DNA from: Macrostomum lignano
Lineage: Eukaryota
Length of the DNA: 64,000 nucleotides
Direction: 5' to 3'
Assembly: GCA_002269645.1 (NCBI GenBank)
Contig: NIVC01003738.1
Location: 15,621 to 79,620 of the forward strand
Shown: positions 17,608 to 63,750 of the stretch, in pieces
Layout of the letters: the number at the start of each line of letters is the position of its first letter
How positions within the stretch are numbered: the stretch's first letter is position 1
The notes under the pieces: generated by a model
Seen by the model: the letters and a program-made list of their open reading frames with translations, nothing else
What the model was told of the DNA's origin: nothing
Database searches by the model: none
Translations under genes and position numbers: made by a program

Positions 17608-18497
17608 GTTTCAAAGCACTGAGAGAAACCGTACATTGCTACTGTCATTTCGTACTCACGGCCTGTTTACTATCGGGACCAGCATCTGCAGGCAGATGCC
17701 TGAACTAAACCAATTGAATAAAAATGATCTTGATTGCGCCGTGTCAGCTGCTTTGGCTATTGCAAAATGCGAAAGTCACAGAGTATTAAATAAGCCAAAC
17801 TGATTGAAGTCAAATGTTCAAGAAAAAACATTCACATAAATATTTAAAATAGCCTTAAGTAAAAACAGTCCAATTTTCAGGGACATTAACTGTAGCAGCA
17901 GTTCAAGGCAATCGCCAGAGAGCGCCATTTGATGTAAACAAAGCAGGCAGTCATAAAATCTTCAAATCCAAGCTGCATCCATCGCACACAGCATAAAATT
18001 TCTGTCAGAAAAGCAACATCGGTGAAAGTTTTCTTTACCTGAATATTCGACTTTAAATGAAGGATTTTTACAAATTGCTGCAGTTGCTGCTGCTCTGCAA
18101 CACGAAATTTACCGCTGGCAGCCCAGACTGCTCCTCCACGAGTCAAGATGGTGAGGCAAGCGAATTTAGCTCGTAAAATGCATATCAACTCCAGCTTTAT
18201 AAAATGATTGAAAAAAAGCAATATCTACTCTATTTTCAGTGACAGTGCAGCTGAGCAGGGCTGACGTTCTGCGCACCTGGCAACCCAGCGGTGCGCACTG
18301 CCGTTGGTGGGAGAGTCGGCAGTCAGAGACAAACCGATTTCCTGCTGCTGTGCGGTCCGGGCCTCGGTGGCTTGTGATGCAGCTGAGGCAGCCGATGATG
18401 CTGGAGGCGGTGAGCGTACGAGACTGGGGTGAGTGACGCTGACCGACTCATTCTCATGATGCATGATGAGGCATAGGGAGTCTGGGACACACAGCGT

Positions 18498-18677
18498 GAG
18501 ACAGTGTGAGACCAGCTAGCATCTAATTAGCACTCTGAGACAGTGTGAGACCAGCTAGCATCTAATTAGCACTCTGAGACAGTGTGAGACCAGCTAGCAT
18601 CTAATTAGCACTCTGAGACAGTGTGAGACCAGCTAGCATCTAATTGGCACTCTGAGACAGTGTGAGACCAGCTAGCA
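18498..18677. repeat. 39-bp minisatellite (GAGACAGTGTGAGACCAGCTAGCATCTAATTAGCACTCT), about 5 units, B2 intron 2
   Basis: Direct inspection; no spacers. Confidence 0.95.
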
Positions 18678-20145
18678 GCCAAGCACTCGTGTTGCAGATG
18701 GCCAGTGGCTCGCAGCAGCTCCGGTCGGCTCGCCCGTGTCAGCGGTCGGAGCCTCGAGCCTCTCGCTGGAGCTGCAGCTGGAGGATCCGTGCCGCGCCAG
18801 CTGGGAGGCCTTCAACGGTAGCGACCGCTGGCGGAGTCTTGATGGCTCCAGCGGCACCGCCATGGTGAGTGAAAGAGGCAGCTGTTTGCATGCTGCACAT
18901 TTTGCACATTCTGAGGAACTCAGACATTCTGAGCACTCCTCCTTCCAGCTGCCAGTGGCCTTCCTTCTGTTCAGCAGCTCCCAGCAGCTCCAGTGGAGCG
19001 CTCTCAATCTGCTAGGTGAGGTCCTTCAACTCAGTGCTTTGATTGCAGGTCGCTGAGTTCATTTCACCTCCGCATCCTCAGGCCGCACGGCCCCAATGCA
19101 GCTGAAGGAGACCAGAAACCCATTTTGCCTGAACTGCGAGCCCCTCACGTGGAGACCCGGAGATCGCATTGGCTTCTCAGTGAGCAGCTGCGGCTCCCAG
19201 ACTCCGAGCTGCTCAGTTCGACCCGCGGATGGCAGCAGGCGAGAGGATGAGCTGGTGAGCGACTGGCCGGCCTTGACTGACAGATTTTCCTCTTTGAGGC
19301 TGAGAGCTCAGGGCATTCTGTGATTTTCAGCTCAAGATCTCAAGACCGGGCAGTGATCGGATTCGAGTCACCCATTTTGAGTACCTTGTGGAGGAGACGG
19401 AAGTTCCGCGGACTCTGACCTGCTGGCAGGGGAACCCAGCGGCTCTGCAGATTGAGAGGGAAATCGCTGTGATATGCAAGTCTAGAGATTTGCGGGTGCA
19501 GCTGTCATTCAGGGCTCTGTACAGTTTTACACCTATAAATCCATTTGTATGCACTTTTAATTGTAGTTGTGAAGGGAAGCTTCACTCTATCGGTCTCTCC
19601 GGTGTGGGTCTCGGGCAGGAAGATTTTCTTAGAAGCCGAAGCGCAGCGATTCTTTCCGGAGCCCAGGATTCGGTGTTCGATCAGGGCGGTAACGGAGCAG
19701 CCTTTGAAATTTGAGAGTCAGGTGAGGACAGGTGCACTGTCTTTGAGTGAGCGATACCGCTGACAGCACGAGTTGATCTAAAATCTGACCGCCACGCCAC
19801 AACCCCAAGTTCCCAGTCACCGCGCCACCGCGTCACCGCGGCCTATCCTTACACAAAGCACACGTAAAATGCAGGTTCTGCATTCTATGTCGTTTAACTT
19901 TCAGAACCGGTCTGTAGTGAAGGACAATAAAAGCAGGGTTCTGCTGTCAGTTCGCTCAAGGTTCAGCTTTCACGCATCGCTCTCAATGCACGGAGGCCAG
20001 ATTCTGTGCTGGGTTACTCTCACTGGGGATGAAGACTTGGTTGCTATGAAGTACATGTTAAATCACAGTCTAACTCAGATTAGCGGTGAGAAATGCGCGA
20101 ATTGAATTCAGACTTCCATATCTCAGTATTCTGTGTTACCTCTCC

Positions 20146-20286
20146 CATCACCCCTCACCCAGTCACCCCTCACCCAGCCACCCCTCACCCAGCCACCCCT
20201 CACCCAGTCACCCCTCACCCAGCCACCCCTCACCCAGCCACCACCCACCCAGCCACCACCCACCCAGCCGCCCCTCACACAGCCAC
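20146..20286. repeat. Short 15-bp CACCCCTCACCCAGC array in B2
   Basis: About 9 units, paralog of 921-1946. Confidence 0.93.
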
Positions 20287-21033
20287 TCGCTCGCACTGCA
20301 GAGCCGTGCCAGACGGCCGTAGACCTGGGCTCGAGTCCGTACTGGCAGGTGGACCAAACCCGCCAGATCGCAGTGACCTCCAGCGCCTGCAGCATCTGGA
20401 ATGTGAGCCACAGCTGCCGGCTGCTGCAGGCTGATGGCGCTTCACCCGTGCCGCTCCGCATAGTTGAAGTACGCTTGCACTGAGACTGGCCAAAGTGCTC
20501 AGAGAAGTGCAGAGCCTCACCTGTCCCAATCTGCACCCTCATTCGCATTGCAGCAGAGCAGCTTCAGCAGCGTTCACCAGCTGCAGGTGAGCGGGTCGAT
20601 GGCTCATCAGAACTGGTCCGTTCGCTGCAGCGTCAACCAGTCAGGTGTGGTGTATGATGAGGCTGAGAGTCTGGAGCAGCTGCGACCGCCGATTTTCTGT
20701 GAGTGCCGAACAGTGCATAAAGCGAGTCAGCTGTGAACGCTTTGCTTGAATGCGATTTCCAATTTCCCTGCAGATCCGGCAAGCATTCAGGTAGATGGCA
20801 GGATTGAGAGCTCGCGACTGCACCTGGCTGTGGCTGCCTCCGACGCTCGGCCTCCGTTGTCATCTGTTGTCTGCCAGATCGCAAATTTCACTGTGAGTGT
20901 TTGATGCGAGCCCGAAAGAGGGCCGAATAAGCGTGCATGACATTAGCGTGCAGATGCTTCTCTTTGCTATCATCTTTTCTTTTCAAAGTTAAAATGCTGT
21001 GATGAAAACGTAGTTTAAGTGTTTACGAGGCGT

Positions 21034-21461
21034 TGACTAGAGAACCCAGGTGATTGACTAGAGAACCCAAGTGATTGACTAGAGAACCCAGGTGATTGAC
21101 TAGAGAACCCAGGTGATTGACTAGAGAACCCAGGTGATTGACTAGAGAACCCAAGTGATTGACTAGAGAACCCAGGTGATTGACTAGAGAACCCAATTGA
21201 TTGACTAGAGAACCCAGGTGATTGACTAGAGAACCCAGGTGATTGACTAGAGAACCCAGGTGATTGACTAGAGAACCCAAGTGATTGACTAGAGAACCCA
21301 AGTGATTGACTAGAGAACCCAGGTGATTGACTAGAGAACCCAGGTGATTGACTAGAGAACCCAAGTGATTGACTAGAGAACCCAGGTGATTGACTAGAGA
21401 ACACAGGTGATTGACTAGGGATCCCAGGTGATTGACTAGAGAACCCAGGTGATGGACTAGC
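21034..21461. repeat. 21-bp minisatellite (ACTAGAGAACCCAGGTGATTG)n, about 20 units
   Basis: Direct inspection. Confidence 0.96.
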
Positions 21462-22180
21462 ACCCTTCTTACCCAGCCTTATTTAACCTAATATTTTAGA
21501 CTAGTCTGATTCTAGCAAGACTTGAACCGGCCAGGGAGAACTGCACTGACTTGACGGGAAAGCTGTAGCATAGGCCTGTGTCTTATTGTTCTAACTTAAA
21601 GCCGTAGTTTTCAGATGCGCACTTGCGCCAGACTCGTGTGTTTGAGATGTGCGCTTGCGTCGTGAGCGCCAATGTAATCTATTGGTGGGGCAATGAGTGC
21701 AGGATTGAAACCCCATCGCATCTGCTCCCCAGCCAGCCCCTGTAGGACAATGAGGAGAAATGTGAATATTGAACTCGATGTCAACTTGAGCACCGGAATG
21801 GAACCAACCGCTCAGCTGTGGACCAAGCTGACTCATTGAACTAAATTCAAAGTCAAATCTCAATAACTGTCCTCATTTCCAGAGTGTTGAGCTGACGCGG
21901 ATGCAAAACAGCCACACCTGGCAGGCAAATGGCAGCATTACACTACCAGCATGTGCATCGCTGAATAACGAATTGAATTTTCTCATCAACTGCACTGCTC
22001 AGCAGGACTTCAATGGCTCGACGATTTTTCAAACAAGCGAACAGGTCTTTCGTAACTGCCCCCCAAAGGAAACAGGTAACTCATTCTTCCTAACATCAAG
22101 TGATTTTTTCCCGACATTTTGTAACCACTGTTGCATGTTCAAAACTGTATACTTAGATGTAACTGCTCAGTTGCGGGAGA

Positions 22181-25100
22181 TATTGGGAGGTAGATTAGTA
22201 GCATTGATTTTCTTTCCAATTCCACTGCGTGATTTAATGTACGTACGTGTTTATTATTCAATTTTCTATGTACGCTGATTTAGCCCAGGCCCATCTCACC
22301 CACCCCCCTCCACGCTGGCTGATTCTGACTGACTGCAATATATATATCATCGAGAGGGCTTATTAGCCCTGTGTACGGTTTACGCTTTTCGTTTTGTTAG
22401 CGTCCCGCTTGAGCCTCAGCTCCAAAATAGTTTGGCGGACCATCGGTCTTTTCATTTCTACAGTACATTTTGGTAGCACTAAATTGGACAAGCCTAAATT
22501 ACCACTGACGTGGCAAGCAATAGAATCCTACTGTGAAACGAAGGACCAAGATGGACAGTGACGACGCCAATGAACAACAACAGGAAGCCCAAGACGATGC
22601 CGGCGCGCTGCGTTTAGAGAAGCTGCGCTTCGAGAAATCCCGAAAAAAAGCAGCGTTCACTCGTTGCAAAAACAAGCTGTCTTGGCTGCTAAAGACGCGC
22701 GCCTCTGATGACGAAGTGCAAGCTACCTGCGATGCTCTATCCGACCTGCAGGACCTGGTCAGCGCCATCCAGGAAGAACTGCATCAAGGCTACGCCGACG
22801 CCAAGGACAACGAGAGGCGACAGCGCCTACTAGAAGAGATGGAGGAGACTGAGCGCGACTACCAAGCTGCCATTCAGCGCGTCGAAAGTTCCAGAAACCG
22901 GGGATTGCAGCGCGCCCAAGAAGCCCCTCCTGCCGCGAGTTCAAGCGGTGAGAACGCTGCGGGTGACCAAGAAGAAGCAGCTGGTGAGTTAGACAAACTT
23001 TCTGGCAGTGCTGCGTCCAGCAAAGGATCCAACCCGAAGGAGCTTTCAAAGGATTTGTGGAAGATGCTGAAGCGTGTTGAAATCCCAACATTTAGTGGAG
23101 AAAAGCAGAAGTATGAAAACTGGAAGGCAGCCTTTGTTGCGTGCATCGACAGCGCCCCTGCAACACCAGAATTCAAGTTGCTGCAGCTTAGGCAGTACCT
23201 CGGCGGTGAAGCTTTGAAGGTTATAGAACATCTAGGACACTCCGCTGCTGCATATGAGGCTGCAAAAGAGAGACTAGAGAGAGAATTTGGTGGACAGCGT
23301 AGACAACTTGCTCTGCACTTGTAAGAGCTGGACAGCTTCCCGATCGTGCGAAATGGAAACGCCAAGGATCTGAAAAGCTTTGCTAATCTACTGGATGTGG
23401 CTGTCGTTAACCTTGAGGATGCGGGTAAAGAGGCAGAGCTTCAAGATGGGATGTTGTATGTGAGGTTGCAGAAAAAGTTGCCTGAGCAGATGGTTGCCAG
23501 CTACCGGAGGTGGATCTTTGAGCAGCGGAAGCCGGAGAGTGTTAGAAATCTGAGAATTTGGGTGCTGCAAGAAGCAGAGTTTCAGACTGAAGCGTCAGAG
23601 ATTGTGCAGGGCGTTGCCACCATGCAGCAGGAGCGTCAAAAGCGAGAGCAGCGACCAAAGACTTTCGTTACTACGGACAGTGACAAGAAGGTACAGCGAA
23701 AGATTTGCATTGTTTGTCAAGGTGATCACGAGCTGTGGTCCTGCAGTGAGTTCAAGGAGCTTCCGGTGGAAAAACGCTGGGACGCGGCGCAGAGCTCGAA
23801 GTGTTGTTTCCGGTGCTTGGGCCAAGGACATCTTGGCAGCCAATGTCGGCGCGGTCGTCGGTGCGGCATCAACAGCTGCATAAAGTTCCACCATCGCTTG
23901 CTTCATGCAGAAAAAGCGTTGGCCAAGTCTGGTGAAGCGAAGCAGACTGCATCCAAGGACGCTAAATCCGCTTCTAGTTCAGGAAAGACTGGACCGGTGA
24001 CGCTTCTGTCGGCTGGTGAAACGGCAATCTCGTTACGAACGGTGCCTGTAGTCTTACGGAACGGGTCCCGGAAGCTGAAGGTGAACGCCTTGCTCGACGA
24101 TGCCAGTACCAGGAGCTACATCAACATCGGGATAGCAGAAGCGCTTGGAGCGCATGGAGTGCTCGAAAAGGTGAAAGTCGGAGTCATCAATGGCCAAACA
24201 GAGACCTTCATGACAGCCCCAGTCTGCTTTAGCTTGGAAAGTCTGGATGGTCAGACCAGCTCAATGATCGTCGCCTTCACCGCTGATCACGTGACCGGGT
24301 CCCTCAAAGGCGTCGACTGGCACGAAGAAGCGCAGCAGTGGCCTCATCTGAGAAATGTGCCGTTTCCGAAGCTGTGTGAGCCTGCAGTAGTGGACTTGCT
24401 GATTGGTGCTGATCACCCGGATCTTCACGTGTCCTCAAGGAAATCGCCGGACAGCCGCTGGAGCCAAAGGCGCGCCTGACTCCCCTGGGTTGGACGTGCA
24501 TCGGTCGCACAGAGCAGGACAATTCTGAGATGCAGAACGCCCATTTTGCTGCCACTTTCTTCAGCTGCGATTCCGAATCTGGTCAGGTGGCTAAGATCCT
24601 GCGGCAGTTTTGGGAGATCGAGAACGTATCAGAAGGTGCCAATCGAAGTCCGCTGACCGCCGATGAGGAGAGAGCCGTCCAGCAAGCCAAGTCGTCGCTA
24701 AAGTACACGAAGGGCCGTTACCAGATCGGGATTCCATGGAAAAAGGATCGGCTGGCTCCAGCAGGCACTTTCTCAATGGCCTTGAAGCGACTAAAGAACA
24801 CCGAACAGCGGCTGATTAAGGATATGAACGTCTGCAAGCAGTATCAGGAGATCCTTGAAAAGTATGAACAGCAAGGTTATATCCGAAAAGTGTCGCAAGC
24901 TGAGACTGAAGGCCGCTGTTTCCTGCCGCACTTCTCAGTGCTGCGGCCAGACAAGGCTACAACAAAAGTGCGGATAGTCTTTGATGCATCGGCTGCCAGA
25001 TTGAACGACCAGATCCTCCAGGGCCCCAAACTGCAGAGGGATTTGGTTGACGTGCTGCTTCGGTTCCGCCGACACCCGATTGCGATCGCATGCGACGTAG

Positions 25101-27227
25101 CGGAAATGTATCTCCAGATCGAAATGGACCCGAAGGACAGGCCGCTGCACAGTTTCCTTTGGCGGGACGCCGATACTTCAAAGCAACCGGATGTCTACGA
25201 GTTCAACAGAGTGGTGTTCGGCGTCACCAGCTCTCCTTTCTTGGCACAGTTCGTTACCCGCTGCCATGCTGAAAAGTTAAAAGGTGAGCTTCCAGAGGCG
25301 GCCGAGACAGTACTGCACTCTACTTATATGGATGACAGCCTGGACTCTGCGCCCACCGAGGCAGCCGCCTGCAGGCTGTACGATCAACTCAGTGAGCTCT
25401 GGAGGCGCGCCGGCATGCACGCGCGCAAGTGGGTCTCGAACTCGAGAGCTGTGCTCGATAGAATCCCACCTGAAGACCGTGCAGCCGAAGTTACCTTGGA
25501 CAGCAAAGAACTACCAAGCACCAAGACACTGGGTGTCACGTGGCAGAGTGAGCAGGACGAATTTACTTTTAAAGACGAAAACGAGTCGTATCAGGTGACC
25601 ACAAGAAGGAGTTTGCTGACAAAGCTAGCGAGTGTCTTTGATCCACTTGGATTGATCTCCCCGTTTGTCGTGCAGGCGAAGATTCTGATGCAGGAGCTTT
25701 GGCAGTCAATCTGGTCAATTCTGAGGGAGACGGACGTCACCGATGAGGAGCTGCTAAGCGCGTTTGCTGGAGTGGAGGCACTTCTTAATTCAAGGCCGCT
25801 GACGTACCAGACAGCGCATCCGGCTGATGATGTGCCGCTGACGCCGAATCACTTCCTCATCGGGCAAGTCGGCGGGAAGTTTGCACCGAAGGTCGACGCT
25901 GCCATCGCCCGCAGTCCTTCAAGAAGATGGCGTCACGTCCAGCAGCTGGTGTCGCAGATCTGGCGCCGGTGGTTGCGCGAGTGGCTGCCGGGACTCGCAC
26001 CGCGGAGCAAGTGGCGCCGCGAGCTGCCTGACCTACAACCTGGAGACGTGGCGCTGCTGGTGAGCCCGGACTCGCCTCGGGGTCACTGGCCGCTGGCTCG
26101 CGTGCTGGACGTCATGCGCGGTCCTGACGGGCACGTGAGAGTCGCCACAATCAGAGTCGGTGATCGCACAATGACGAGACCAATATCAAAGTTGTGTCCA
26201 ATATCGTCAGGTTAGTTTGCAAACTTTTGTTAGAGAATTAGTCTTTGTCTGGTTTTTGCAATTTTTCTGATGAGTTGTTCAATTTTCCTGCTTGTTGCAT
26301 TGTTCGTAACGTCTTCTTTCCCTTTCATGCTAATAGGAATCACCCTGTTTTTGCCGTCTTAACCCAATTTTCGTTTTCAGTGTTCAACGCGATAAACATT
26401 CATTATTTAGCTATTTATTTTCTTGCGTGAATTTTGCTGAACAGCAGTCGTTACGGTTTAGTGAATTTGTCGGCAAGTTTGTCTTTTGCGTTTTTTGAGT
26501 TTTTTACGAGCGATATTTGCATTCTTTGAGCTCTACTTAACATTGCTTGATTTTGTTCGCTTAGAAGTACCATAGTTTCTGCGCTAGTTACGACCTTTTG
26601 ATAGCCCAATGCTTATAATTTTTTGCTTCAGTTTTTATTTCAGTTGCGGTTGGTGGTGGCGGTAATTTGCGTTAGTATTTAATTTTGAAATTTTACTTGA
26701 CAGCTGACGTACTCTTGCAAAATTTTCGATTGTCATCTACGATCTGCGTACTTATTGTCATCTAATTTTCTACCCGTCACAATGTCACCATTATTTTTCA
26801 TGCAACGTTGTTTTTTTTTGCTTTTTGAGTTTGATTTTACATCACGCATCGTTTTCGAATATTTTCCTATTACCGAATTCGTTTTCATTGTTTCATCCCT
26901 CGAATAGTTTTTGTCATTGTCATGCCAAGGTGGGGGGTATGTTTGGGAGGTAGATTAGTAGCATTGATTTTCTTTCCAATTCCACTGCGTGATTTAATGT
27001 ACGTACGTGTTTATTATTCAATTTTCTATGTACGCTGATTTAGCCCAGGCCCATCTCACCCACCCCCCTCCACGCTGGCTGATTCTGACTGACTGCAATA
27101 TATATATCATCGAGAGGGCTTATTAGCCCTGTGTACGGTTTACGCTTTTCGTTTTGTTAGCGTCCCGCTTGAGCCTCAGCTCCAAAATAGTTTGGCGGAC
27201 CATCGGTCTTTTCATTTCTACAGTACA
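22181..27227 (+). mobile_element. BEL/Pao LTR retrotransposon, internally deleted
   Basis: LTRs of about 288 bp (22181-22467, 26940-27227) appear identical except that the 5' LTR lacks its TG start; PBS TGGTAGCA (22471, tRNA-iMet-like); PPT before 26940; TSD not recoverable. Confidence 0.95.
22533..26215 (+). pseudogene. BEL/Pao gag-pol polyprotein, disrupted
   Basis: DUF1759-like IPTFSG...W..F, three Cys/His knuckles, protease ALLDDAS, RT YMDD, C-terminal RWRHVQ...W...G.DGHVR. In-frame TAA at 23322, frameshift near 24450, and a jump from MQELW to ...EELLSAFAGVEALLNSRPL near 25705 that removes RNase H and most of integrase. Confidence 0.9.
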
Positions 27228-27378
27228 TGAGGCATCGACAGAGCTGAGCAATATCAACAGCTTTGAGTGGTACGGTTTACTGAAACTGAGATGGAACCGC
27301 TCATCTGTGAACGTCTGCTGCTCCAGTTACCAAACCTGCACTGGATTGACCGTCTTTAAGTCTCTGCAGTGCAAATCT

Positions 27379-29644
27379 TTAAAACAGTAGAAAGACCATG
27401 GGGAGTGTAGTTCAAATACACACAGTTTCCGTTGTCTGGATTTCCAAAAATATTTAACCAATTGCCATGACAATCCAGAATGAACGATGAAGCAACTTCA
27501 TTCATTCAGAGAATCACGAAAAATCGGCATCGTCGAGATATTCAGCGATTCTCCTCTGGGTGTCTGGTGGCAAAAACCACCAACATTGGCAAAATTTTTC
27601 TGCTCACGAAATCTAACCATGAAACCACGTCGGCTCACCAAACTATGCATATCAGTCGCAGGGGCTTTTGCTCTCAGCACTCCAGGCACCAGGGTCCCCT
27701 TCATCACCGTCTGGAGCATCGGCGGCGACCGTCGGGACCTTCAACAAAAGCACCCGATCGGCATCTCAGAGACGGCTGCGTTCCCAAAACTGAAAAGGAA
27801 GAATCCTCTTCTGCATGCAGCATTCAGTCAGTAGACATAATCGGTGAATAAAATAGACGATGGCGACCCTCTAGGCTTACCTGCAGACATACAGGCGACC
27901 TTCGGGACCTTCAACGGAGTGCCAACACGCGGCCTTGACGAGCTGGCACCGCCAACATAGTGATTTTTCTATCAAGGCACCAGACCAGGCATGTCTGCGT
28001 ATTATACAATGGTCCTGCACCATGTTCAGCATTCAGCTCTGTCTGGACGACCTTCGGGACCTTCAACGGAGTGCCACCACGCGGCCCTGACGAGCTGGCA
28101 CCGCCAACATCGTGATTTTTCGATCAAGGCACCAGACCAGACAATGCTTTTTCACCATGTTAAATTCGAAACTGCCTAAAATCGCCAGCGGACTGCCGCA
28201 ACGGACAAGCTCTACGGCATCCGACGCCTGTGGGACACCTTTGTCAGTCAGCTGCGCCATCCTGTTCTTTCCGGGCCGTACCTCTGCGTCGACGAAAGTC
28301 TGGTTGTTTACTGGGGTGTGGACTGTGACTTCACGGTATTTCTGAAGGAGAAGCCCGGTCGCAATGCTGCCAAGCTGTTCCTGCTGACATCGGCTGGGAA
28401 TCCAGAGATTCAGGATGACATGGACATCCGCTATGTGTTCAATGTGGAAATCTGCACTGGCAAAGGAACACTGCTGTCCACTACTTTTGCATCACAGGAA
28501 TCCGATGCTCGGCTGGCCAAGGGCTCAGAGGTGTGGAGTGGTGAGCAGGTTCTTTGCCGCTTGGCTGATCCATTCAGAGGACACTGGTGCAACATCACAT
28601 GTGACAGATTCTTCTCGAGTCCTGCGCTGGCCAATCTCTTGTACCGAGAAATGGGATTCACGTTTCTTGGAACAGTGATGCGCACTCATGGTGGTCTGCC
28701 ACCCGATCTCAAGAATTCAACTCAAAGCATGGCACCACACACGAGCGAATTCCGGTTTGTTTTCTGAGGAGCTCACGTGCGTGTCCTACTGCCCCAAGGC
28801 GGGCCGAACCGTGATGTTGCTGTCCACCATGCATCACGACAGACAATTTCTTCCCAATGGCAAGCCTGTAGCAATAGGCACGTACCAAGAGTTGGAGGTG
28901 CCAGCTTGTCAGGGCCGCGTGGTGCCACTCCGTTGAAGGTCCCGAAGGTCGTCCAGACAGAGCTGAATTCTGAACATGGTGCAGGACCATTGTATAATAT
29001 GCAGACATGCCTGGTCTGGTGCCTTGATAGAAAAATCACGATATTGGCGGTGCCAGCTCGTCAGGGCCGCGTGTTGGCACTCCGTTGAAGGTCCCGAAAG
29101 CCTAGAGGTCCCGGTAAGCCTAGAGGGTCGCCATCGTCTATTTCATTCACCGATTATGTCTACTGACTGAATGCTGTATGCAGAAGAGTATTCTTCCATT
29201 TCAGTTTTGGGAACGCAGCCGTCTCTGAGATGCCGATCGGGTGCTTTTGTTGAAGGTCCCGACGGTCGCCGCCGATGCTCCAGACGGTGATGAAGGGGAC
29301 CCTGGTGCCTGGGATGCTGAGAACAAAGGCCTGTACGACAGATGGATCCAGATTATTGAGCCAATATGGATTCACCATAAAGGTTTATACAGTGTACTGT
29401 TGGTTGTCCTTGCCACCAGTGTCTTCGACAAGTATCGTTGAATATCTCGACGATGCTGACGTCGGATGACTTTGAAAGTTAGTTCGTCGAAAAGGGCGGA
29501 AAATTTTGATCCATGTGGTGGACTTTTACGAAAATCGGTAATTCGGTTTGCGAGCTATCGTGAAATGGGTTGTGTGTATTGGTACGAGCTACACCCCCGT
29601 GGTCTTTCCCCATGGGGAAAATAGCGTGGTATTTCTACTGTTAA
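27379..29644 (+). mobile_element. Non-autonomous piggyBac derivative with very long inverted arms
   Basis: TTAA at both ends followed inward by CAGTAGAAA; about 27390-28150 is the reverse complement of about 28880-29640; the centre (about 28180-28900) encodes broken transposase (DKLYGIR, LCVDESL, EKPG, ITCDRFFSS, LGTV, MLLSTMH). Confidence 0.8.
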
Positions 29645-46652: not shown

Positions 46653-46692
<40 letters not shown>

Positions 46693-46733: not shown

Positions 46734-46773
<40 letters not shown>

Positions 46774-48900: not shown

Positions 48901-48950
48901 CAGTGTTTTTTTGTTAGAATTATACTCGTACCATATTTTTATTAAAGGCT

Positions 48951-52382: not shown

Positions 52383-52417
<35 letters not shown>

Positions 52418-52418
52418 A

Positions 52419-52467
<49 letters not shown>

Positions 52468-52840: not shown

Positions 52841-53339
52841 AGGCGCTACCAAAGTACCAAAGCTGCAATAATTTCAACGCAAAGCTGAACAAAACTTCAA
52901 TCAGAATCGAAGCCGCCAATCACTACTGCGTGAACCAGCTGACGCTAAAAATCAGTCTGGACGATTTCTATCACCGCGACGAGATTTTGATTCCGCAACT
53001 GCCGCACGAGACTGAGGTCAGTGAGGTGCGCCATCGCAGGTGCAGGTGGATTGTAAGCTTCAACACCGGCAGCAAATGCACGCAGCTGGTACTGGCTGGG
53101 TTGCCAGCTCGGGAGAACTCCAGTTTCAGTTCGACTGACAGCCGTTTAAGATTCACCTCGATGTCGAATGCAAAAACGACCGTCTTACCTGGAATATTCC
53201 ATGTCGTTCCTTTGGAGAGCAAGTACGTTACCTGTAGTCAGTGCTTGTCGCTTTATTACCATTATTTCGCCCAACACAAGTGAAATGGAAAATTTGCAAT
53301 AAAGACTCCCTGCACGGAGGCGGCCTCTCCTGCGTGCGC

Positions 53340-53535
53340 CCTACCCCGTGCTCTGTGCTGATTGGCTGCGGCCAGCCCGTCTGTGACACGAAGGCTGCGC
53401 CCTGCCCCGTGCCCTGTGCTGATTGGCTGCGGCCAGCCCGTCTGTGACACGAAGGCTGCGCCCCGCCCCGTGCCCTGTGCTGATTTGCTGCGGCCAGCCC
53501 GTCTGTGACACGAAGGCTGCGCCCTGCCCTGCGCG
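53340..53535. repeat. 61-bp tandem repeat x3 containing ATTGG (CCAAT) boxes, in an A3 intron
   Basis: Period 61 (53355, 53416, 53477); single unit in A1 at about 14765-14850. Confidence 0.85.
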
Positions 53536-54130
53536 GGGTTCTGATTGGCTGGCCTTATGCGCAGTTGGCGGGCTTCGCTGATGGGGTCGCCTAGTCCCGC
53601 CCTATTGTACGGGTTTTTCTTTATTATTTATTACTTTTTTTGCTTCCTGTTGGGTCTTGGTTCCATGGCGACGAATCATTCACGGTAGCTGACTTTGGAG
53701 GTCAGGTAAGCAGCCTATTCAGCTGTGTACAAACCGAGGCCAACTCTGCTTAACCTGCAGCGTTAGCGGCACTTCAGACTAATTTAATTTACACGTACAG
53801 AATATAAATAAATAAACTGATTACAGTAGAAAAGCATGAGGTGTTCTTAGCTTTAAATCTAAGTTCCTAGGTTACACACCGTTTGCAGCAAAATCTTGGG
53901 ATCCGCGAGCTGATGGCCAAAATGCTGCAAACTACAGATTTCTGCTGCCACTTCCCAGCATCTGCAGCCGCGACATGCTGAGCTACCGGAGCAGCTGCTT
54001 TGCTGTTGTCTCACTTCAGCAGAGCTTGACAGATGCGCTGTCCAGCATCAGGGGTGACGCTCAGCTAGCCAGCTTCACCAGTTGGTCCGAGATAGAGGAG
54101 TTCATTGCATCAAGTGAGTGGTTTTCACAT

Positions 54131-54535
<405 letters not shown>

Positions 54536-55869
54536 TTGATAACTTGAAACTCTAGACAGAGAGGTATTGTGAGCAAGTGTTAAAAATAGAATTATTGGCT
54601 TCCAGTGAAATTTTCACGACTTGCGAGTCCAAAAGTCCTTCTGCTTGAGTTGCTCATGCTCTTAACAATTATCTTTATAGTAAGTCTCCAAATAGCTGAC
54701 CCTCTTTCATACAAAAAGTCACATCAACATTGCAGTAAGATCGCGAATGCCTCTGGCGGCAACTGTGTTTCGTTGAGAGTCGACTCAAACGGACCTGTTA
54801 TTGCCTTTGTTAACTGCAACATCCCGATGCTGTCGCTAGTCAGCTTCCCAGAGACTCATTCCGGTCTCAGCCAGTTGGACTGCAATATATCAGGCAGATT
54901 GTCTGACTTGTTCTCCGCAAATGAGGCTGTGAAACAGGTGAAAGCGGATGCTTCAATGAAGTTGCAGGGTGACGAAGACGATCGTGTGCCACCAGGAGTA
55001 TCAAGTTTCGAGCTCAATGAAGCTATGAGAGGGAGTGAAAATCAACCTTCAGCCAGCAATCAGAAGGCTCCCTTTGCCATACCGGTCATCGCGGCAATAC
55101 TCCAATACTCTTTGTTTTTACTCTGTTTTTACTTTACACAACTTTTTACTTTCTGAACTATTTCTATTGTCAATCGCATTCAAGTACCGCCTCTGCATAG
55201 GTAATTCTGCAAACTTAGTTTTTTTGATTTAGATAAAACTCAAAAACTCTAAGTACTTCAGATTAATAATGATGCCTAGTAAAAGGCTGAAATGATTTGT
55301 GTTTTATTAACGTATTGATTTTCAGTTTAGTGCTAATCATATTTACTATCGATATTATTCATGTATATAAATTGAGTATAAGCCAGTCGGTGTTTATCAT
55401 TATTTTTTAACTAAACACACAAATTGATCAATTCATTTTTACAGTGTAAACGGGTTCAATTTTTTTATTAGCATGAGACATTTTAAAACACTGAGAGGAG
55501 CTATTTACTACCTACCAGGCAGATGCTTGGCTTGAAGTAAATCCTGATTTCTGCGTCAGCTGCTTTGGCTATTACAGAATACAGAGTCACAGAGTAATAA
55601 ATAAGCCAAACTGACTAAATTCAAATGTAAGGATTCAAAACATTCACATAAATGCTTAAAATAGCCTTAGTAAAAACAGTCCATTTTTCAGGGACATTAA
55701 CTGTAGCAGCAGTTCAAGGCAATCGTCGGAGAGGCGGCATATTGATGTAAACAAAGCAGGCAGTCATAAAATCTTCAAGTCCAAGCTGCATCCATCGCAC
55801 ACTGCGTAAAACTTTTAAGTAAAAATCGACATTAGCGAAAGCTTTCTTTAGCTAAATATTAGATTTTCA

Positions 55870-58800
55870 ATGAAGGATTTTTACAAATTGCTGCAGTTGT
55901 TGCTGCTATGCAACACGAGATTCACCGCCAGCAACCCAGACTGCTCCTCCACGAGTCAAGCCGGTGAGGCCAGCGAATTTAGCACGTAAAATGCATATCA
56001 ACTCCAGCTAACACAGAGATTGAAAGTAAGCACTATCTACTCTTTTCCAGTGACAGTGCAGCTGAGCAGGGCTGACGTTCTGCGCACCTGGCAACCCAGC
56101 GGTGCGCACTGCCGTTGGTGGGAGAGTCGGCAGTCAGAGACAAACCGATTCCCTGCTGCTGTGCGGCCCGGGCCTCGGTGGCTTGTGATGCAGCTGACGC
56201 AGCCGATGATGCTGGAGGCGGTAAGCGTGCGAGACTGGGGTGAGTGACGCTGACCGACTCATTCTCATGATGCATGATGAGGCAGAGGGAGCCTTGGACC
56301 CAAAGTGTGAGACAGTGTGATGCTAGCATCTAATTAGCACTCTGAGACAGTGTGAGACCAGCTAGTATCTAATTAGCACTCTGAGACAGTGTGAGACCAG
56401 CTAGCATCTAATTAGCACTCTGAGACAGTGTGAGACCAGCTAGCATCTAATTAGCACTCTGAGACAGTGTGAGACCAGCTAGCATCTAATTAGCACTCTG
56501 AGACGGTGTGAGACCAGCTAGCATCTAATCAGCACTCTGAGACAGTGTGAGATCAGCTAGCATCTAATTAGCACTCTGAGACAGTGTGAGACCAGCTAGC
56601 ATCTAATTAGCACTCTGAGACAGTGTGAGACCAGCTAGCATCTAATTAGCATCTAATTAGCACTCTGAGACAGTGTAAGACCAGCTAGCATCTAATTAGC
56701 ACTCTGAGACACTATGATACCAGCTAGCATCTAATTAGCACTCTGAGACAGTGTGAGACCAGCTAGCATCTAATTAGCACTCTGAGACAGTGTGAGACCA
56801 GCTAGCATCTAATTAGCACTCTGAGACAGTGTGAGACCAGCTAGCATCTAATTAGCACTCTGAGACAGTGTAAGACAAGCTAGCATCTAATTAGCACTCT
56901 GAGACAGTGTGAGACCAGCTAGTATCTAATTAGCACTCTGAGACAGTGTGAGACCAGCTAGCATCTAATTAGCACTCTGAGACAGTGTGAGACCAGCTAG
57001 CATGTAATTAGCACTCTGAGACAGTGTGAGACCAGCTAGCATCTAATTAGCACTCTGAGACAGTGTGAGACCAGCTAGCATCTAATTAGCACTCTGAGAC
57101 AGTGTGAGACCAGCTAGCATCTAATTAGCACTCTGAGACAGTGTGAGACCAGCTAGCATCTAATTAGCACTCTGAGACAGTGTGAGACCAGCTAGCAGCC
57201 AAGCACTCGTGTTGCAGATGGCCAGTGGCACGCAGCAGCTCCGGTCGGCTCGCCTGTGTCAGCGGTCGGAGCCTCGAGCCTCCCGCTGGAGCTGCAGCTG
57301 GAGGATCCGTGCCGCGCCAGCTGGGAGGCCTTCGGCAGCAGCGACCGCTGGAGGCAGATTGGGGTGAACGGAGTAGATCAAGTAAGCTGCTTCATTTGAA
57401 TTATCTTATCATAATAATGAAATTAATAAATCCATCCATTTCACACTTCAGCCCGTAGTTCGTTTCCTTGTGCTAAGTAGCTTGAGAACTGCTGGACTTA
57501 GCTGGAGGGCCGTCTCATTAACAGGTTCCAAAGAGACTTTTAAATTTTATGAAGTTATCACTGAATCATAGCTTATTGTGAATTAAGTGCTTTAGAAGCA
57601 GGTGCAATTTTTCTTGTAGGTCGCTTTCTACCGCTGAGCCTCACAGTAACTGACAACCGTTTTTGCCCTCTGAGAGACCTGTCCGCCTTGCACGATGGAG
57701 TTGAAGCCTGCTTCTCTGTTTCAAGATGTACCAGCGAATCAATTCAATGCTTCTTTAACCTAAGCAATGGCGCAACTCTGGAGCCGAGACTGGTCTGCTC
57801 AACTCTTCTTTATAGCGTGCTATCAATACTTCTTCTTGCACTGACTTGATACAAAATTCGCTTTTTCAGCTACGAAGCCAAAAGCAGCAAGCTGAATTCG
57901 AGTTCACAGCCAATTTCTCGCTGCACGGAGCACTGCTCACCTGTCTTCTGCCTGATCGGCCAGGGATTCGAATCGAGCAGACCATTGGAATCGTTGGTGA
58001 GAAAGAAGTGTCTGCCTGAGTTAAAAAATGTATTTTAAGTCCGCTTTGAAGATTACAAAGCGAAACATGCACTTTTCAGTCACACCAAGTGTTGAACTGT
58101 CGTTATCAACCGTGTGGGTGATTGGTCGCAGAGCCAAGGTGCACTTTTTCTCAAGCCCAGCTTATCCTCCTCAGCAGCACAGGTGCCAAATTATCTCTGG
58201 CAGCAGCACCTGGGAACTGAATGAGCATTTTAGTAAGGTAAGTAGTATTATATTATTGTTGAAAATGCTGTACCTTGCCCAATCATGTACTTTTCCATGA
58301 AATAAACTTCCAGACTAGACAGGCTTATATCAGGAACAGCATCAACATGTCGCTAACTGAAGTAAAGTCTGAATTTGTTGTCACAGTCACGTCAGACATG
58401 CTGAATGGCACCGTGAGATGCAGTAGCAGCTATAAAAGTACAAGTCAAGGAGAAGTCATGAAAGATATCGATATTTCAAGCATCAGCGGTAAGTGCTTGC
58501 ATTAGAGAATCTCCTATACGCCCGATTGGAAGAGCCATAAAATCTCCTCATTTCAGAGCCTTGCACAACTGCCATTCATGTAGACAACATCCAGTACTCG
58601 TATCAGGTTGTACAAGTGACGTCACTGAAGTGCAGCATTTGGAATGTTCAGCACAGCTGCTGGCTTGTCAAGCCCAAAGAAGATGTCCTGGAGCATCTAA
58701 TTAAGCTTGCTGTACGGTTCTTTGATTTTGTAATAATGCTTTTTATTCAGAAGTTACTGCAACAATATCTGATGTCTTCTATTGCAGCAAGACGGCTTCA

Positions 58801-61119
58801 GCAGCACTCACAGGTTGAATATTATGAAACAAGAGCAGAAAAGAGACTGGCTAGTGAGATGCAGCGTTAATCAGTCGGGAGTGACATACCCGGATGTGGA
58901 AATTGAGTTAGCAAGCGATGCTGACAGTGAGTCAAACGATGCATTCAATCACTGTTAATTGTTCCAATGCAAGTTCAAAGGTTTTTTACCACTTAAATCT
59001 ACACTACACGTTGCTACATTTGTACTCGTATTAATACGAGCGTAATGCAAGAGACCTGCGAGCACCCCGACGCTACGTCTTCGGCGACCTTGTCCGCAAT
59101 CAGCTGCCCGTTCCGCTCACTCCTGATCACATACGAGCGTACGAGCGCCTCAATACTGCACACAGGCACGCACTCATACGCACGCTCCCACAAGGTGTAC
59201 TGCGGCCCTGACTTTCTAAGCGTCAGGCATGTACCTCTCTGGGCCTTAAGGGCTGGTCCTCATGAGCACTGAGCACGTTTGCTCTACTCACCTCCAGAAT
59301 AAAAACAAATGAGCGTTTTTAATATTATAAACTGTACTCGTTCGTATTCTGTTGGCTGCCATTAAAGCGACTTTTGATAACAGTCAACCCACAGCCAGCG
59401 TGGAGTCGACCCAAATTAATTGGTCATTCCACATGTAAGCACTCGAGAGTGCTTACTTAAGCAACTATTCTTAATCGTTAAATTTTCAGGTAGTGTATCT
59501 TCATTTGCTTATTACCCCTCGTAACTTTGAGGTTGTAACTGTTGCGAGCCTAAGTGTTCGATGTGTAACTACTCTGCCACTTACTAACCCCACTTTCTTC
59601 AGCTTTCTACTATCAGTGTGGACTGAGTTGCATAATTTTGCCGATTTTATCTGCCCTCGGCCTCATCCTGAGCTGCATGATTATTCGAAGAATTCGCCGC
59701 GCTAAATCAGCAAAGCCAAACTCGACTTCAAGTAGAAGTTCGACATTTAGAGGACGACGTACCCTCCTCTCGAGTGCGGCCACCTCGCCGCAGGCACAGG
59801 TAGGGTTAGCCACAGATTTAGTTTGTACATTAGGGCACGCATGTAAGTGTCAAATACTGGTGTTTTGATGAAGAATAGCTTTAAACTTAAAAGAAAATTC
59901 TAGCTACCCGGGGTTGTTTTGGCTATTCGCTCAAGCACTTTTGCTATTGGCTTTTGCCTGAAACTGAAGCTATTTCTTAGATTAGCCTGGACACAGATTG
60001 CCTGGTAAATAGCGCTGCTTATCTGATCAGATTTCAGGTGTGCACAGAAGCACAGTTCTAATTAGAACTTCCCTCAGCCTGAACGGCAATATTACATAAG
60101 TCCATGTGACTAAAATTTAGCAGTGAATTTCGGTGCATCTAATACCAGCTTTTCTAGAGCTAGATCCACTTTTGTTTCTTTAAAAGTTTAATTCCCATTC
60201 TAAATAGCAATATAGTAGAGATATTCTGTTGAGTTTGTGAAATGAATTGCGATCGCTTTCAATCAAGCGTGCTATGGCCTGCACGAGTATTCTATGAAGC
60301 CGTAGCCCATTGGTCAATCATGGATGAATAAAACCTTTGGTCTAGTGCGGCGCTCTGATGTGCCAGCGGCCCAGGCTCGATTCCAAGTGCAGTCATTAAT
60401 TTGGGGCTAAATTGGAATCTCGGCTTGGCTCTGCTCGTGCAATTAACGCCCCTGATCAGGGCCAACCCCCAAGGCACAGTGAAGTGCACATGTCTAAGAT
60501 AAAGTTAGGGCCGCTGTAAACTCCTGTGTGAGTGAGTGCCTGTGCGTATGACTGCGTACGTATCGCGCGCTTGTGTGCCTGCTCAGGGGAGTCGGGGGAA
60601 TGGGCAGCAATGCCTCTCGCCGGTTGTGACAATGTCGCCTAAAGTGCATCATGGGTGCAAACAGCTCCTTGCCTGTAACAAAAAAATGGCCCTTATATTC
60701 CGTAGCCCAGAATCATGAGCAGGCTGAACTGCTAGATAGACAAGGAAGAAGCTGGCGTGATCAAAGCAATCTGTTAACTTTCTCACCTTTAAGGCCTATT
60801 AAAGTATCATGTTAAAATTCTTCAAAAGAAATGACTCTGAATAACAGAAATCAATCGTTTCCACCCCCAGCGAGCGGCACCACAGCTCACTCATCATCAG
60901 GTTGATTCCTCGGCGTCAGTGAGCACAGGTGGTCCACCACCTGCAGAAAGCAGCAGCCGCGGCAATGAAAACAAGTCAATTAGCAGTCAAGAGACCGACC
61001 CAGTGTACGAAGAAGTATCTTTGTGTGTCTACAGGCCGGTGCACCCGCTGCCACGGTACTCACGGCAGTTCTCAGAAAAAAATTGTCGACGCGCCCACGA
61101 CTCCAGTCGGTTTGATTGA
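55870..61119 (+). CDS. Family B copy B4: intact 630-aa type I membrane receptor (signal peptide, discoidin-like, 3 Ig-like, TM, Tyr-motif tail)
   Basis: Twelve GT-AG exons, all phases consistent and no stops: 55870-55963, 56051-56239, 57218-57381, 57452-57524, 57620-57792, 57870-57996, 58080-58237, 58314-58488, 58557-58711, 58788-58926, 59603-59799 (TM GLSCIILPILSALGLILSCMII then RRIRR), 60871-61119 (PVYEEVSLCVYRPV). Total 1893 nt. Confidence 0.82.
56322..57197. repeat. 39-bp minisatellite, about 22 units
   Basis: Same unit as 18498. Confidence 0.96.
60339..60645 (+). mobile_element. SINE family 2 in the last intron of B4
   Basis: Reverse complement of 6139-6480. Confidence 0.75.
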
Positions 61120-62179
61120 AACTCTTGATCACATTCTGTAGGAACCATTGAATAGAATGCACTGCAAACGGCACTTCGAGTATGTTCAGTAAACATTCTG
61201 ATTCTACAAAAATAGGGATTGCTTCATCACTATTTGTATTACTAATATTATCATTATTAAATGCACACACCCAGTGTTTTGAGTTTATTTTTTACGATAT
61301 TATTTGAGGCAACCTTATAAACACAGCGAAATAAGAAATTAAAAAAAGCTAGTGCGCAACGTTTTTTGGCGCAAATCGAAATTTAAAATAGAATCTCATA
61401 TGCGCAAACAAATTATTCGAGATTCTTTTCGGTACCGATATGAAGCCTCAGGGCAGTTGCATTCTGGCCTGCGTCATGCCTTTGATGTATTTTTTGGGAT
61501 TTCCATTATAAGAAGGGCCAGATAGAGAATCTAGCGCATTACTGTGGAGAGAGGAGAGGGAGAGAAAGAAAAGGGAGAGAAAAAGAGAAGAGATAATACA
61601 GTTGAGAGAGACAAGCTTTGTGCGGACTGCATTGCTATTTTGAAGTTTCAAAGGACCAGATGCGTATTAGATAGAGAGACTTCGCAGGTCGCATGTTACC
61701 TGGGAACCGCAGTTTGCCAACCCCTGTTTTAGAGTTATTACGTAAAGTACTTTATCCTCTGTAGGAAGTCGCTGTTAAATTCGAAACTTTATCCATGATT
61801 TCCTGTTCAAACTTATAACAGGAGCACAATAAAAGTTCCCACTACACCTAAGCAGGAAACGAACTTCACTTCCTACACAGCACCCACATGGCATTTTGGG
61901 CAGGTCCTGTTCTCATAAGATATCTTTGGTCTCGCAGTCCTCATATATTGCTTTGCAGGCCAGTTTGTGGTTCGCTAATCTAAACTGTAACAGGGTGTGC
62001 TTAAATTCAATTCCAGCTCAAAAGCCAGCTCTGTGTGCTCTGATTGATTTTGCTACTCGTCCATGCTGACAGTTTCGCATCATTTTGCTGTTGACTTTAG
62101 CTGCAATGCCAGCCTCTGTAGCTATATTGTTGACTATATATGGTTAGCTATATATGGTTAGCTATATATGGTTAGCGTT

Positions 62180-62500
62180 GTAGTTTTAGTGGTTAGGGTT
62201 TCAGACTCACGACTTGAAGGTTGGGGGTTTGATTCCCGATCGGACTGGAACAATTTGTGTCGCTTGATTGAATTTGAATTTTGAATTTGAATTTTGCATT
62301 GCTTCATAGTTCACCCAGCTGTAAAATGGGTGCCAGCATTACTGGGGTAATTGAGGGTGTGTGGCGACCCCCAGTCCTTGGACTGAACAGCCGTACGCAG
62401 CCTTCAGATGCACCGCGAAATAGCTGCGGCTGAGCTGTCGGTTGCACATCTGGCCCCATTGGGGCAGGTGTAGTCAATAGTTATTGTTATTATTTATTTA
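62180..62500 (+). mobile_element. SINE family 1
   Basis: Shares AGTTCACCCAGCTGTAAAATGGGTGCCAGCATT...GTTGCACATCTGGCC with 4973-5270. Confidence 0.8.
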
Positions 62501-63109
62501 TTACGCAGTTATATGTAGTATTCACTGCTATCTGAAGACTTAGCAACTGAATAACTTTTTTCAAGTTTTTGCAAAATCTATTGTACATTCAATTGTATCG
62601 TCTAAAACTTTCGCTGTACTGTAAATAAAAAAATCGTAAAATGGTAAGTTGTACTTGCTTTAGGATTAGATAATTTAGACTCATACCTCGTTTCTGCGGA
62701 ATCTGAATTTAAAATTATAGAGAAGTTGATTTCAGTAGTCCCGAAGGAACATGCACGATCGTCTTTGCAACTATAGAATCATCCTGACGCATCTGAAACT
62801 TGTAATTTTAGCTTCAATATTGCAAACTAGACAGCGCAACGGCGACTATAATCAAATTCATAACTACAAAAAAGCGTACAACCAGAAATTCAGTTTGGGT
62901 TGTTCCTGCCTCGATGCTGCTTTCGAATTAAAGGTTACATAATGATCTGGCTGTCACAAACAGTAAGCATCTGTGACGGCAAGAAACACTGAACTTCGCT
63001 AGCTGCAGGTAAATTTAAGGCGTGATAAATTTCTGCCATCCAACAATATTATCAGCTGAAAGCATAATCCAAGCCAAGTTGCTCAACAAGAAACGAAAAA
63101 GAATACCAG

Positions 63110-63750
63110 ATGGATCACAATCTTGTATGCATTCTGGTGCTGTTACTGAGCTCAAGAATTGCATGCAATGCTCTGCTCTGCACTGATGCAAGTCACGAGA
63201 AGGGTCAGCTGAGTTACTTACTGCCTTTTGAGCCTTTCATTCATGCCTCAGAAAATTTAGCGAATCCTTTGCGATAAATGTTTTAGTGACAGTGCAGCTG
63301 AGCAGGGCTGACGTTCTGCGCACCTGGCAACCCAGCGGTGCGCACTGCCGTTGGTGGGAGAGTCGGCAGTGCTGGAGGCGGTGAGCTTGCGAGACCGGGG
63401 TGAGTGACGCTGACCGACTCATTCTCATGATGCATGATGAGGCAGAGGGAGTTTGAGACACAAAGTGTGAGACAGTGTGAGACCAGCTAGCATCTACGAG
63501 CGTAATTAGCACTCTGAGACAGTGTGAGACCAGCTAGCAGCCAAGCACTCGTGTTGCAGATGGCCAGTGGCGCCAAACACTCGTGTTGCAGATGGCCAGT
63601 GGCTCGCAGCAGCTCCGGTCGGCTCGCCCGTGTCAGCGGTCGGAGCCTCGAGCCTCCCGCTGGAGCTGCAGCTGGAGGATCCGTGCCGGCCAGCTGGAGG
63701 CCTTCGGCAGCAGCGACCGCTGGAGGCACCTTGGAAGATCTTACAACAAG
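63110..63750 (+). pseudogene. Family B copy B5 (5' part), frameshifted
   Basis: Signal exon 63110-63203 (MDHNLVCILVLLLSSRIACNA); exon 2 at 63287-63399 is 113 nt instead of 189 nt (76-nt deletion); exon 3 has a duplicated acceptor (63560 and 63592) and small deletions. Confidence 0.75.

Follow-up and report, generated by a model that had tools for sequence, protein, structure and literature searches.

A homogenized N-terminal module, probably maintained by gene conversion, in a tandem array of Ig-like receptor genes of Macrostomum lignano

Gene conversion homogenizes the N-domain exon of paired or decoy immune receptors, as described for CEACAM1-related receptors (PMC2832619, PMC7042247) and Siglec-11/16 (PMC5701461), and for Siglec-5/14 in the work of Angata et al. 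2006, as cited in PMC2832619. The locus analyzed here, 64,000 nucleotides of the flatworm Macrostomum lignano (assembly GCA_002269645.1, contig NIVC01003738.1, positions 15,621 to 79,620 of the forward strand; hereafter, the window), carries five copies, B1 to B5, of a gene family encoding immunoglobulin-like (Ig-like) receptors. At least five to six subfamilies are recognized (X, Y, V, Z, P0010/11-type and P0006-type), which are ~30–45% identical outside their N-terminal domain; the P numbers denote public protein models of the family (P0001–P0038). As in the CEACAM and Siglec systems, these are clustered type-I membrane receptors of the Ig superfamily, in which a short, membrane-distal N-terminal tract is far more alike between paralogs than the remaining gene. 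The putative conversion tract likewise hardly enters the flanks, the cytoplasmic tails and signaling motifs differ, and pseudogenes participate. In CEACAM and Siglec, however, a pair or a few recent duplicates are concerned, whereas the Macrostomum patch is common to at least 14 copies from 5–6 deeply diverged subfamilies on five contigs. Its domain is an orphan, for which neither an Ig fold nor any other known fold is detected: the AlphaFold2 model gives it no confident structure (predicted local distance difference test, pLDDT, ~30). Moreover, the tract includes an intron with a hypervariable minisatellite, and the host is a flatworm. By inspection, the transmembrane (TM) segments and tails of the family contain neither a charged TM residue nor an immunoreceptor tyrosine-based activation motif (ITAM), and no ITAM partner is evident; thus, there is no evident activating/inhibitory pairing.

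A second type of known system is formed by tandem arrays, where non-allelic homologous recombination leads to segmental duplications and chimeric genes, for example in the opsin, globin and KIR/LILR clusters. The window shows the same features: direct duplicates of tens of kilobases, a boundary in a short segment of high identity, a fusion gene at the junction and a related array without the duplication. The substrate is different, being a ~0.4–1.3-kb module that is itself putatively kept up by conversion between paralogs that cannot otherwise be aligned. The explanation that we consider quite probable, on the basis of the sequence comparisons, combines homogenization of this module by gene conversion, crossovers at the module, an older fusion between X- and Z-type genes, conversion patches in the gene bodies and gene decay. 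The module would be kept alike by recurrent non-crossover gene conversion, acting within arrays and also between arrays on different contigs. The tract edges would be the points where homology ends, at the intron-1 acceptor and at the codons ...SWEAF in exon 3; because tracts stop where homology ends, such a module would be self-perpetuating.

The module is composed of exon 2, intron 2 (with a 39-bp minisatellite inside) and the first ~134 nt of exon 3, in total ~410 bp plus the minisatellite. Based on masked self-BLAST and an alignment of the 5' regions, the modules of B2, B3 and B4 are 94–99% identical. The near-identity of B2, B3, B4 and B5 starts within a few bases of the intron-1 acceptor and stops abruptly after ...GGAGGCCTT, the codons for SWEAF. 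An earlier note, made from the letters of this stretch alone, had described exons 2 and 3 as near-identical in B2 to B5; this holds for B2, B3 and B4 up to that point of exon 3, and B5 has the same module in a damaged state. Four loci of the same assembly encoding family members provided 11 more modules. After exclusion of L2c, which has no alignable exon 3, pairwise identities were computed over 14 copies on five contigs, and all module statistics below refer to this set. Nucleotide identity over the module is 92–100%. The median pairwise identity rises from 47% at positions -400 to -201 and 58% at -200 to -21 to 97.9% in exon 2, 95% and 100% in the left and right unique flanks of intron 2, and 96.4% in nt 1–110 of exon 3, before dropping to 53–61% downstream of the module. 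These flank values correspond to unalignable sequence; only members of the same subfamily are exceptions.

The switches, or the homogeneity of the module, could be artefacts: paralogs or homeologs might have been joined during assembly of this neopolyploid's genome, or multi-mapping reads used in polishing might have given a false consensus. M. lignano is indeed a hidden tetraploid of recent origin, and its repeat-rich genome is difficult to assemble (PMC5704211, PMC10733133). The join between the Y-type leader and the X-type body of B2 lies inside the minisatellite-bearing module, in a repeat-rich stretch with 97% identity between the copies, in which assembly software could jump from one paralog to another. 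This join is known from this window alone; a second sequence with a B2-like chimera was not found. However, the junctions at 22085, 40580 and 57355, which the earlier note had singled out for a misassembly check, are all three continuous on the independent contig NIVC01001776.1 (L002). The duplicated segments are 3–13% apart and, hence, distinct loci, and each module copy has private variants. In addition, public protein models from more than one source (UniRef/metaclust, NCBI) show the same invariant domain on different bodies. An artefact is, in our opinion, very unlikely as the origin of the pattern, and the homogeneity of the module is unlikely to be a product of polishing. The two points on the B2 join count against the explanation that we favor, and so do several others. 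Conversion is read from sequence comparison rather than from directly observed events, and short-read polishing might slightly raise the apparent identity of the module. The 39-bp minisatellite is not unique to the module (L001 510–1578). L2b, the copy collinear with B2 on L002, has another 5' part, P0011-type up to exon 6, with a break at the window equivalent of ~19490, so that at least one further rearrangement is needed in one of the lineages. Finally, a clear target-site duplication was not found at the BEL/Pao-type element in the 3' part of B2.

The units of the minisatellite in intron 2 are 97–99% identical between loci, and its copy number varies from about 2.5 to 33. Recombination or conversion hotspots linked to minisatellites are known in humans, MS32 and CEB1 being examples. 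The Macrostomum repeat shares with these its GC richness, its very unstable copy number and its place in the center of a region of frequent exchange. A role as conversion initiator is a plausible inference; in contrast to MS32 and CEB1, the repeat may also be a mere passenger. At the L001 position, an intron of a neighboring gene, which is not family-like, is filled by the same 39-bp minisatellite; the repeat is, therefore, dispersed and not module-specific. A more far-reaching idea is that the module and its unstable minisatellite form a built-in recombination cassette and not a passive product of conversion: a hotspot that copies one 'constant' N-domain to all paralogs and lets neighboring receptor genes frequently swap leaders and bodies, in the germline or possibly somatically. 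We consider this, too, very unlikely; if true, it would amount to a diversity-generating system for a family of recognition receptors in a flatworm.

A similar picture might arise with no DNA exchange at all, if the N-terminal domain were under extreme purifying selection, at the level of the protein or of an embedded nucleotide element, and the rest of the gene diversified. The domain is nearly invariant in every public family protein, and the boundaries of the module fall on a splice site and on a fixed codon, as would be expected. The synonymous sites are, however, as homogeneous as the replacement sites (synonymous differences per site, pS, 0.039; nonsynonymous to synonymous ratio, pN/pS, 0.70), and the few coding differences in the module are close to neutral. 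The intron-2 flanks (95–100%) are conserved to the same extent, and the minisatellite units are nearly identical across loci. Furthermore, the module is retained in copies with a broken frame (B5, L2e) and in otherwise dead ones (B3, L2c), and a search of the entire window against Rfam gave zero matches. The orthology signal is also erased in the module: between B4 and its collinear counterpart L2d, the identity is 97/95/97%, no closer than between B4 and its paralogs; the flanks of these two copies are 10–18% different. The intron-2 flank of B4 even agrees at 100% with the one in L2f, which is X-type and lies on a different contig, and module variants are common to different subfamilies and contigs. 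Purifying selection as the sole cause seems barely tenable. The synonymous and intronic conservation and the retention in pseudogenes point to non-crossover gene conversion (the earlier note had proposed gene conversion or unequal crossover) and not to selection at the protein level.

The sequences upstream of the module follow the subfamily. X-type leaders precede X-type bodies in B3, L2c, L2f, P0005 and P0034; the same pairing is found for the Y-type in B4, L2d and P0031 and for the V-type in B5, L2e and P0032. B2 is the sole copy that joins a Y-type leader to an X-type body. The leaders and upstream regions of B2 and B4 are 90% identical over 745 bp, and both encode MKDFYKLLQLLLLCNT, in agreement with the single lineage assumed for them from the sequence alone. 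A second leader lineage uniting B3 and B5 was not recovered: the two are 62% identical over -200 to -21, a value in line with that of B3 with B2 (61%) or B4 (62%), and their signal peptides are unrelated. The common upstream and intron-1 sequence that had been cited for this lineage does exist in part, as an exact 14-mer upstream (40378, 63087) and, at the 3' terminus of intron 1, the 11-mer TTGCGATAAAT; of the quoted 13-mer, B5 alone has an exact copy. Since the leader exon and intron 1 are subfamily-specific, it is an internal patch that appears to have been exchanged between genes, and crossovers alone cannot keep such a patch, flanked on both sides by subfamily-specific sequence, identical. 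Repeated recent unequal crossovers or exon shuffling of a young 5' cassette onto old bodies, or a mobile exon-carrying element, can be given as little credit as purifying selection: crossover chimeras do exist in the family (B2, L2b in L002, the X/Z junction), but crossovers would move the leader and upstream sequence along, which are instead subfamily-specific and diverged as much as the bodies, all 14 modules sit at one in-frame position with conserved intron phases, and the module edges in the 5' region alignment show neither terminal repeats nor target-site duplications.

Next to gene conversion, the identical module probably doubles as a substrate for crossovers. In the masked self-BLAST, window positions 1–18831 (B1, C1 and the leader and module of B2) are 87–97% identical to 41715–57351 (B3, C3 and the leader and module of B4), C being an unrelated gene located between the receptor genes. 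The similarity stops at the 3' edge of the module, exactly where the chimera in B2 is situated. On L002, the order L2b-C-L2c-C-L2d-L2e is collinear with B2-C2-B3-C3-B4-B5, and the unit B1-C1 is absent. C1 is 94.6% identical to C3 and 88–91% to the copy on L002; the B2 and B4 leaders are 86–90% identical to each other and 82–88% to L2d. As the duplicates of the window are closer to each other than to L002, the duplication would postdate the split from L002. The simplest reading is a single unequal crossover in which the B4 module paired with the ancestral B2 module: ~38 kb were duplicated, B1 and C1 arose as copies of B3 and C3, and B2 became chimeric. The Y-type leader and X-type body of B2 at the end of the duplication, together with the collinear contig lacking it, support the unequal crossover already suspected in the earlier note. 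Neither the far end of the duplication nor the reciprocal product is seen in the window, which begins inside B1. Given the recent hidden tetraploidy, L002 is probably the homeologous array of the window.

A plain crossover between B3 and B4 was considered and rejected. It predicts a B3-type 3' end of B2 with C3/B4 as the neighbor; instead, a Z-type 3' end is seen, followed by C2 and B3, as in L002. L2b (within L002 15725–25055) is a three-part chimera, with a P0011-type leader and sequence up to exon 6, X-type exons 7–12 and a Z-type 3' end, suggesting that such rearrangements are common in the family. L002 also contains an internal duplication: at 6–16 kb, a P0010-type gene precedes L2b, and at 76–89 kb this arrangement recurs, with a partial gene of P0010/11-type in front of L2f (X-type).

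The 3' end of B2 appears to have a separate and older history. The similarity of B2 to B1 and B3 is gone ~10 nt into intron 12, at 22085–22090, close to the position from which the earlier note had described B2 as divergent. The 97 bp that follow 22085, as well as the sequence to the right of a BEL/Pao-type long terminal repeat (LTR) retrotransposon inserted there, are 96–98% identical to L002 21076–25474. L002 carries the uninterrupted, empty site (...GCGGGAGAT directly followed by GAGGCATCG..., near 21795). The interrupted sequence is a Z-type coding exon (CNCSVAGDEASTELS...), 80% identical to aa 377–431 of P0001. This exon, 12', is out of frame in B2: the X-type exon 12 ends in phase 1, and the Z-type exon needs phase 2. 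Because the junction at 22085 is continuous in L002, the joining of an X-type gene, just past exon 12, to a Z-type 3' part would be older than the split between the window and L002. The retrotransposon, whose two 286-bp LTRs are 100% identical, seems to be a young insertion that split the Z-type exon after the X/Z fusion. Its gag/pol open reading frames (ORFs) match PF05380 (Pao peptidase), PF00078 (reverse transcriptase) and PF18701 (DUF5641, integrase-associated). An exact-protein look-up with the pol ORF, aimed at the same locus in another assembly, returned nothing. Exons 1–12 of B2 form an open frame of 598 codons, and no in-frame TM exon is present, so that B2 probably encodes a truncated product, without TM segment and tail.

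In the gene bodies, exons 4–12 of B1, B2 and B3 are 93–98% identical per exon, for which the 'near-identical' of the earlier note was slightly generous. Its switch of B4 at about 57355 is sharp: after 57351/57355, B4 has no blastn match to B1, B2 or B3, and the protein identity is 27–53%. Sliding-window identity, a check that had been suggested as well, is patchy along the X-type bodies. In exon 8, B2 and B3 stand together against B1 and L2f at 14 informative sites in a row. This block-wise switching of partners suggests that short conversions act outside the module too and, in this way, may scramble the X-type bodies. For the 3' half of exon 8 (B2 ~19990–20085), there are two sharply distinct versions, whose distribution disagrees with the duplication history: ...VTLTGDEDLVAMKYML... 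is found in B2, B3 and L2b, and the other version in B1, L2f and P0002. Repeats in the introns of the bodies vary likewise. A 15-bp minisatellite in intron 8 is found at orthologous positions with 68 copies in B1 (922–1947), nine in B2 (20149–20286) and 54 in B3 (42659–43467); a 21-bp minisatellite in intron 11 has 20 copies in B2 (21033–21460), 19 in B3 (44216–44621) and none in B1. Between the TM and last exons, (GTCA)n repeats count 52 units in B1 (4352–4559) and 179 in B3 (46326–47057). In the X-type genes, intron 6 has GC-AG ends with a GCAAGT donor (B2 19476–19566, B1 267–357, B3 41978–42090), and its junction is inconsistent in the public models, where either the intron is retained or an exon is skipped.

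Gene decay would have proceeded in parallel. The 3' ends of B1 and B3 had been equated, and B1 3395–4859 does match B3 45383–47357 at 94–97%; the equation fails for the TM exon of B3, which is replaced by an (ATCT)n/(TTAG)n microsatellite (46108–46325), and for a tandem duplication of ~220 bp comprising the end of exon 12 and the start of intron 12 in B3 (45163–45301, 45383–45513). In addition, B3 has a TGA stop in exon 9 (43579–43581). B5 shows a 76-nt deletion in exon 2; the intron-2 acceptor is lost together with 12 nt at the start of exon 3, and exon 3 also has two 1-nt deletions. From these lesions, B3 and B5 are judged to be pseudogenes. A broken exon-1 donor in B5 was also considered and ruled out, since the site, GTCAGC, is a usable donor on comparison with L2e and P0032. 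B1 has intact TM and tail exons.

The proteins of the family are built of a signal peptide, an N-terminal domain of ~107 aa, Ig-like beta-sandwiches, one TM segment and a cytoplasmic tail carrying tyrosine motifs. In the window, the signal-peptide exon followed by the invariant domain, VTVQLSRADVLRTWQPSGAHCRWWES...LELQLEDPCRASWE, is intact in B2, B3 and B4 and damaged in B5; the 5' end of B1 lies beyond the window. The rough translation of the copy at 18057–22077 matches 27 proteins, from Macrostomum lignano only, at 25–94% identity, mostly labelled 'Ig-like domain-containing'. An exhaustive HMMER scan of 1.84 billion representatives gave 24 relatives, and those recurring from the 27 matches are M. 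lignano proteins. Several exons of the window are 98–100% identical to the models P0002 and P0017. In Pfam, nothing above threshold was found for the full-length proteins or for the N-domain alone, the sole listed match (DUF6353 on P0010) being far below the cut-off, and a PDB sequence search with the family proteins and the N-domain gave zero matches. In the AlphaFold2 model of P0008, residues ~160–410 form beta-sandwiches (pLDDT ~80), of which the best structural matches are the ectodomains of SIRP, nectin-like proteins and CD22. The tails differ by subfamily: X-type tails contain SVYLVL, similar to an immunoreceptor tyrosine-based inhibitory motif, and YDYP; Y-type tails, VYEEV; and Z-type tails, YDYP and VYVNQ. 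Literature searches turned up nothing relevant, either for the family and its locus tags or for gene conversion in Macrostomum. As judged by sequence, the window covers a section of a tandem array of receptor genes whose family is specific to Macrostomum and was previously undescribed.

Table 1. Features of the window (positions counted from its first letter).
Feature	Position	Strand	Remarks
Upstream copy of the segmental duplication	1–18831	+	B1, C1, B2 leader and module; masked self-BLAST
B1	1–4850	+	X-type; 5' end cut by window start; frame open throughout; TM and tail intact; best public-model match P0002
B1 exons 5–12	1–45, 122–266, 358–512, 698–878, 1963–2129, 2215–2359, 2435–2553, 3254–3446	+	
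B1 TM exon	~4200–4315	+	
B1 last exon	4575–4850	+	
C1	14320–16099		Unrelated gene 'C'
B2	18057–22075 and 3' remnants	+	Y-type leader, X-type body, Z-type 3' end
B2 exon 1	18057–18150	+	Y-type (B4-like) leader MKDFYKLLQLLLLCNTKFTAGSPDCSSTSQD
B2 module	18234–18831	+	Exon 2 18240–18428; 39-bp minisatellite 18497–18677, 4.6 units; exon 3 to ...GGAGGCCTT
B2 X-type body	18832–22085	+	End of exon 3 to exon 12 (21883–22075); intron 6 GC-AG
B2 putative old Z-type junction	22086–22182	+	Unrelated intron sequence, then start of Z-type exon 12' at ~22157; exon resumes 27229–27360
TE-rich stretch (transposable elements)	22183–35000		Holds the BEL/Pao element and the piggyBac-like ORF (33307–34968)
BEL/Pao-type LTR retrotransposon	22183–27228	+	Inserted in Z-type exon 12'; 286-bp LTRs
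Z-type last (cytoplasmic) exon downstream of B2	30279–30539	+	93% identical to P0027 C-terminus
C2	36864–38104		Gene 'C'
B3	40424–47348	+	X-type, putative pseudogene
B3 exon 1	40424–40511	+	X-type leader MKSTLRQLLPLLLSMRVAASLDCSNVNRT
B3 module	40582–41335	+	Exon 2 40588–40776; minisatellite 40845–41181, 8.6 units; exon 3 from 41202
B3 X-type body and 3' end	41336–47348	+	Putative pseudogene; last exon 47073–47348
C3	52876–54916		Gene 'C'
B4	55870–61119	+	Y-type
B4 exon 1	55870–55963	+	Y-type leader MKDFYKLLQLLLLCNTRFTASNPDCSSTSQA
B4 module	56044–57351	+	Exon 2 56051–56239; minisatellite 56322–57197, 22 units; exon 3 from 57218
B4 Y-type body	57352–61119	+	Exons ~57449–58937, last exon 60871–61119; 93–100% identical to P0017/P0026; collinear with L002 45543–49442
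B5	63110–63723	+	V-type leader 63110–63203; damaged module 63281–63723; remainder cut by window end

The window is eukaryotic in character, with short GT-AG introns and abundant mini- and microsatellites (Table 1). The C genes, located upstream of B2, B3 and B4, resemble aa 1–276 of P0014 and have no Pfam match. In the public models P0014, P0001 and P0005, the upstream C genes are joined to B-type genes, which reflects either mis-annotation or read-through transcripts. Between B1 and B2, a Ty3/gypsy-like fragment with reverse transcriptase, RNase H and integrase ORFs (10151–13661), flanked by identical 193-bp direct repeats, sits in a (AGACACTA)n satellite; it is missing from the duplicated copy between B3 and B4. 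AGACAC-rich satellites occupy the intergenic regions at 8268–10150, 13662–14272 and 51311–52841. The piggyBac-like ORF lies on the minus strand and encodes an intact transposase of 553 aa (PF13843, E = 1e-67), with inverted repeats nearby at 27663–29331. A 26-bp minisatellite of 51 units is present at 31115–32438.

The mechanism proposed here is an ordinary and known one; the clarity of the example is unusual, and the gene family had not been described. The locus would represent an unusually clean case of multi-locus concerted evolution limited to one domain, in which at least 14 paralogs of deeply diverged subfamilies share a patch of ~0.4 kb, including an intron. The same patch would also have been the substrate of crossovers that gave rise to chimeric genes and to the ~38-kb duplication. 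For users of the genome, the public gene models in this region should be treated with caution, since fusions and fragments are frequent among them and several gene copies are apparently pseudogenes. The common module may, on the other hand, offer a single target for RNA interference or CRISPR against the entire family. In this laboratory flatworm, the array would thus reveal an uncharacterized, lineage-specific family of Ig-like receptors, whose orphan N-terminal domain must serve all members in common.

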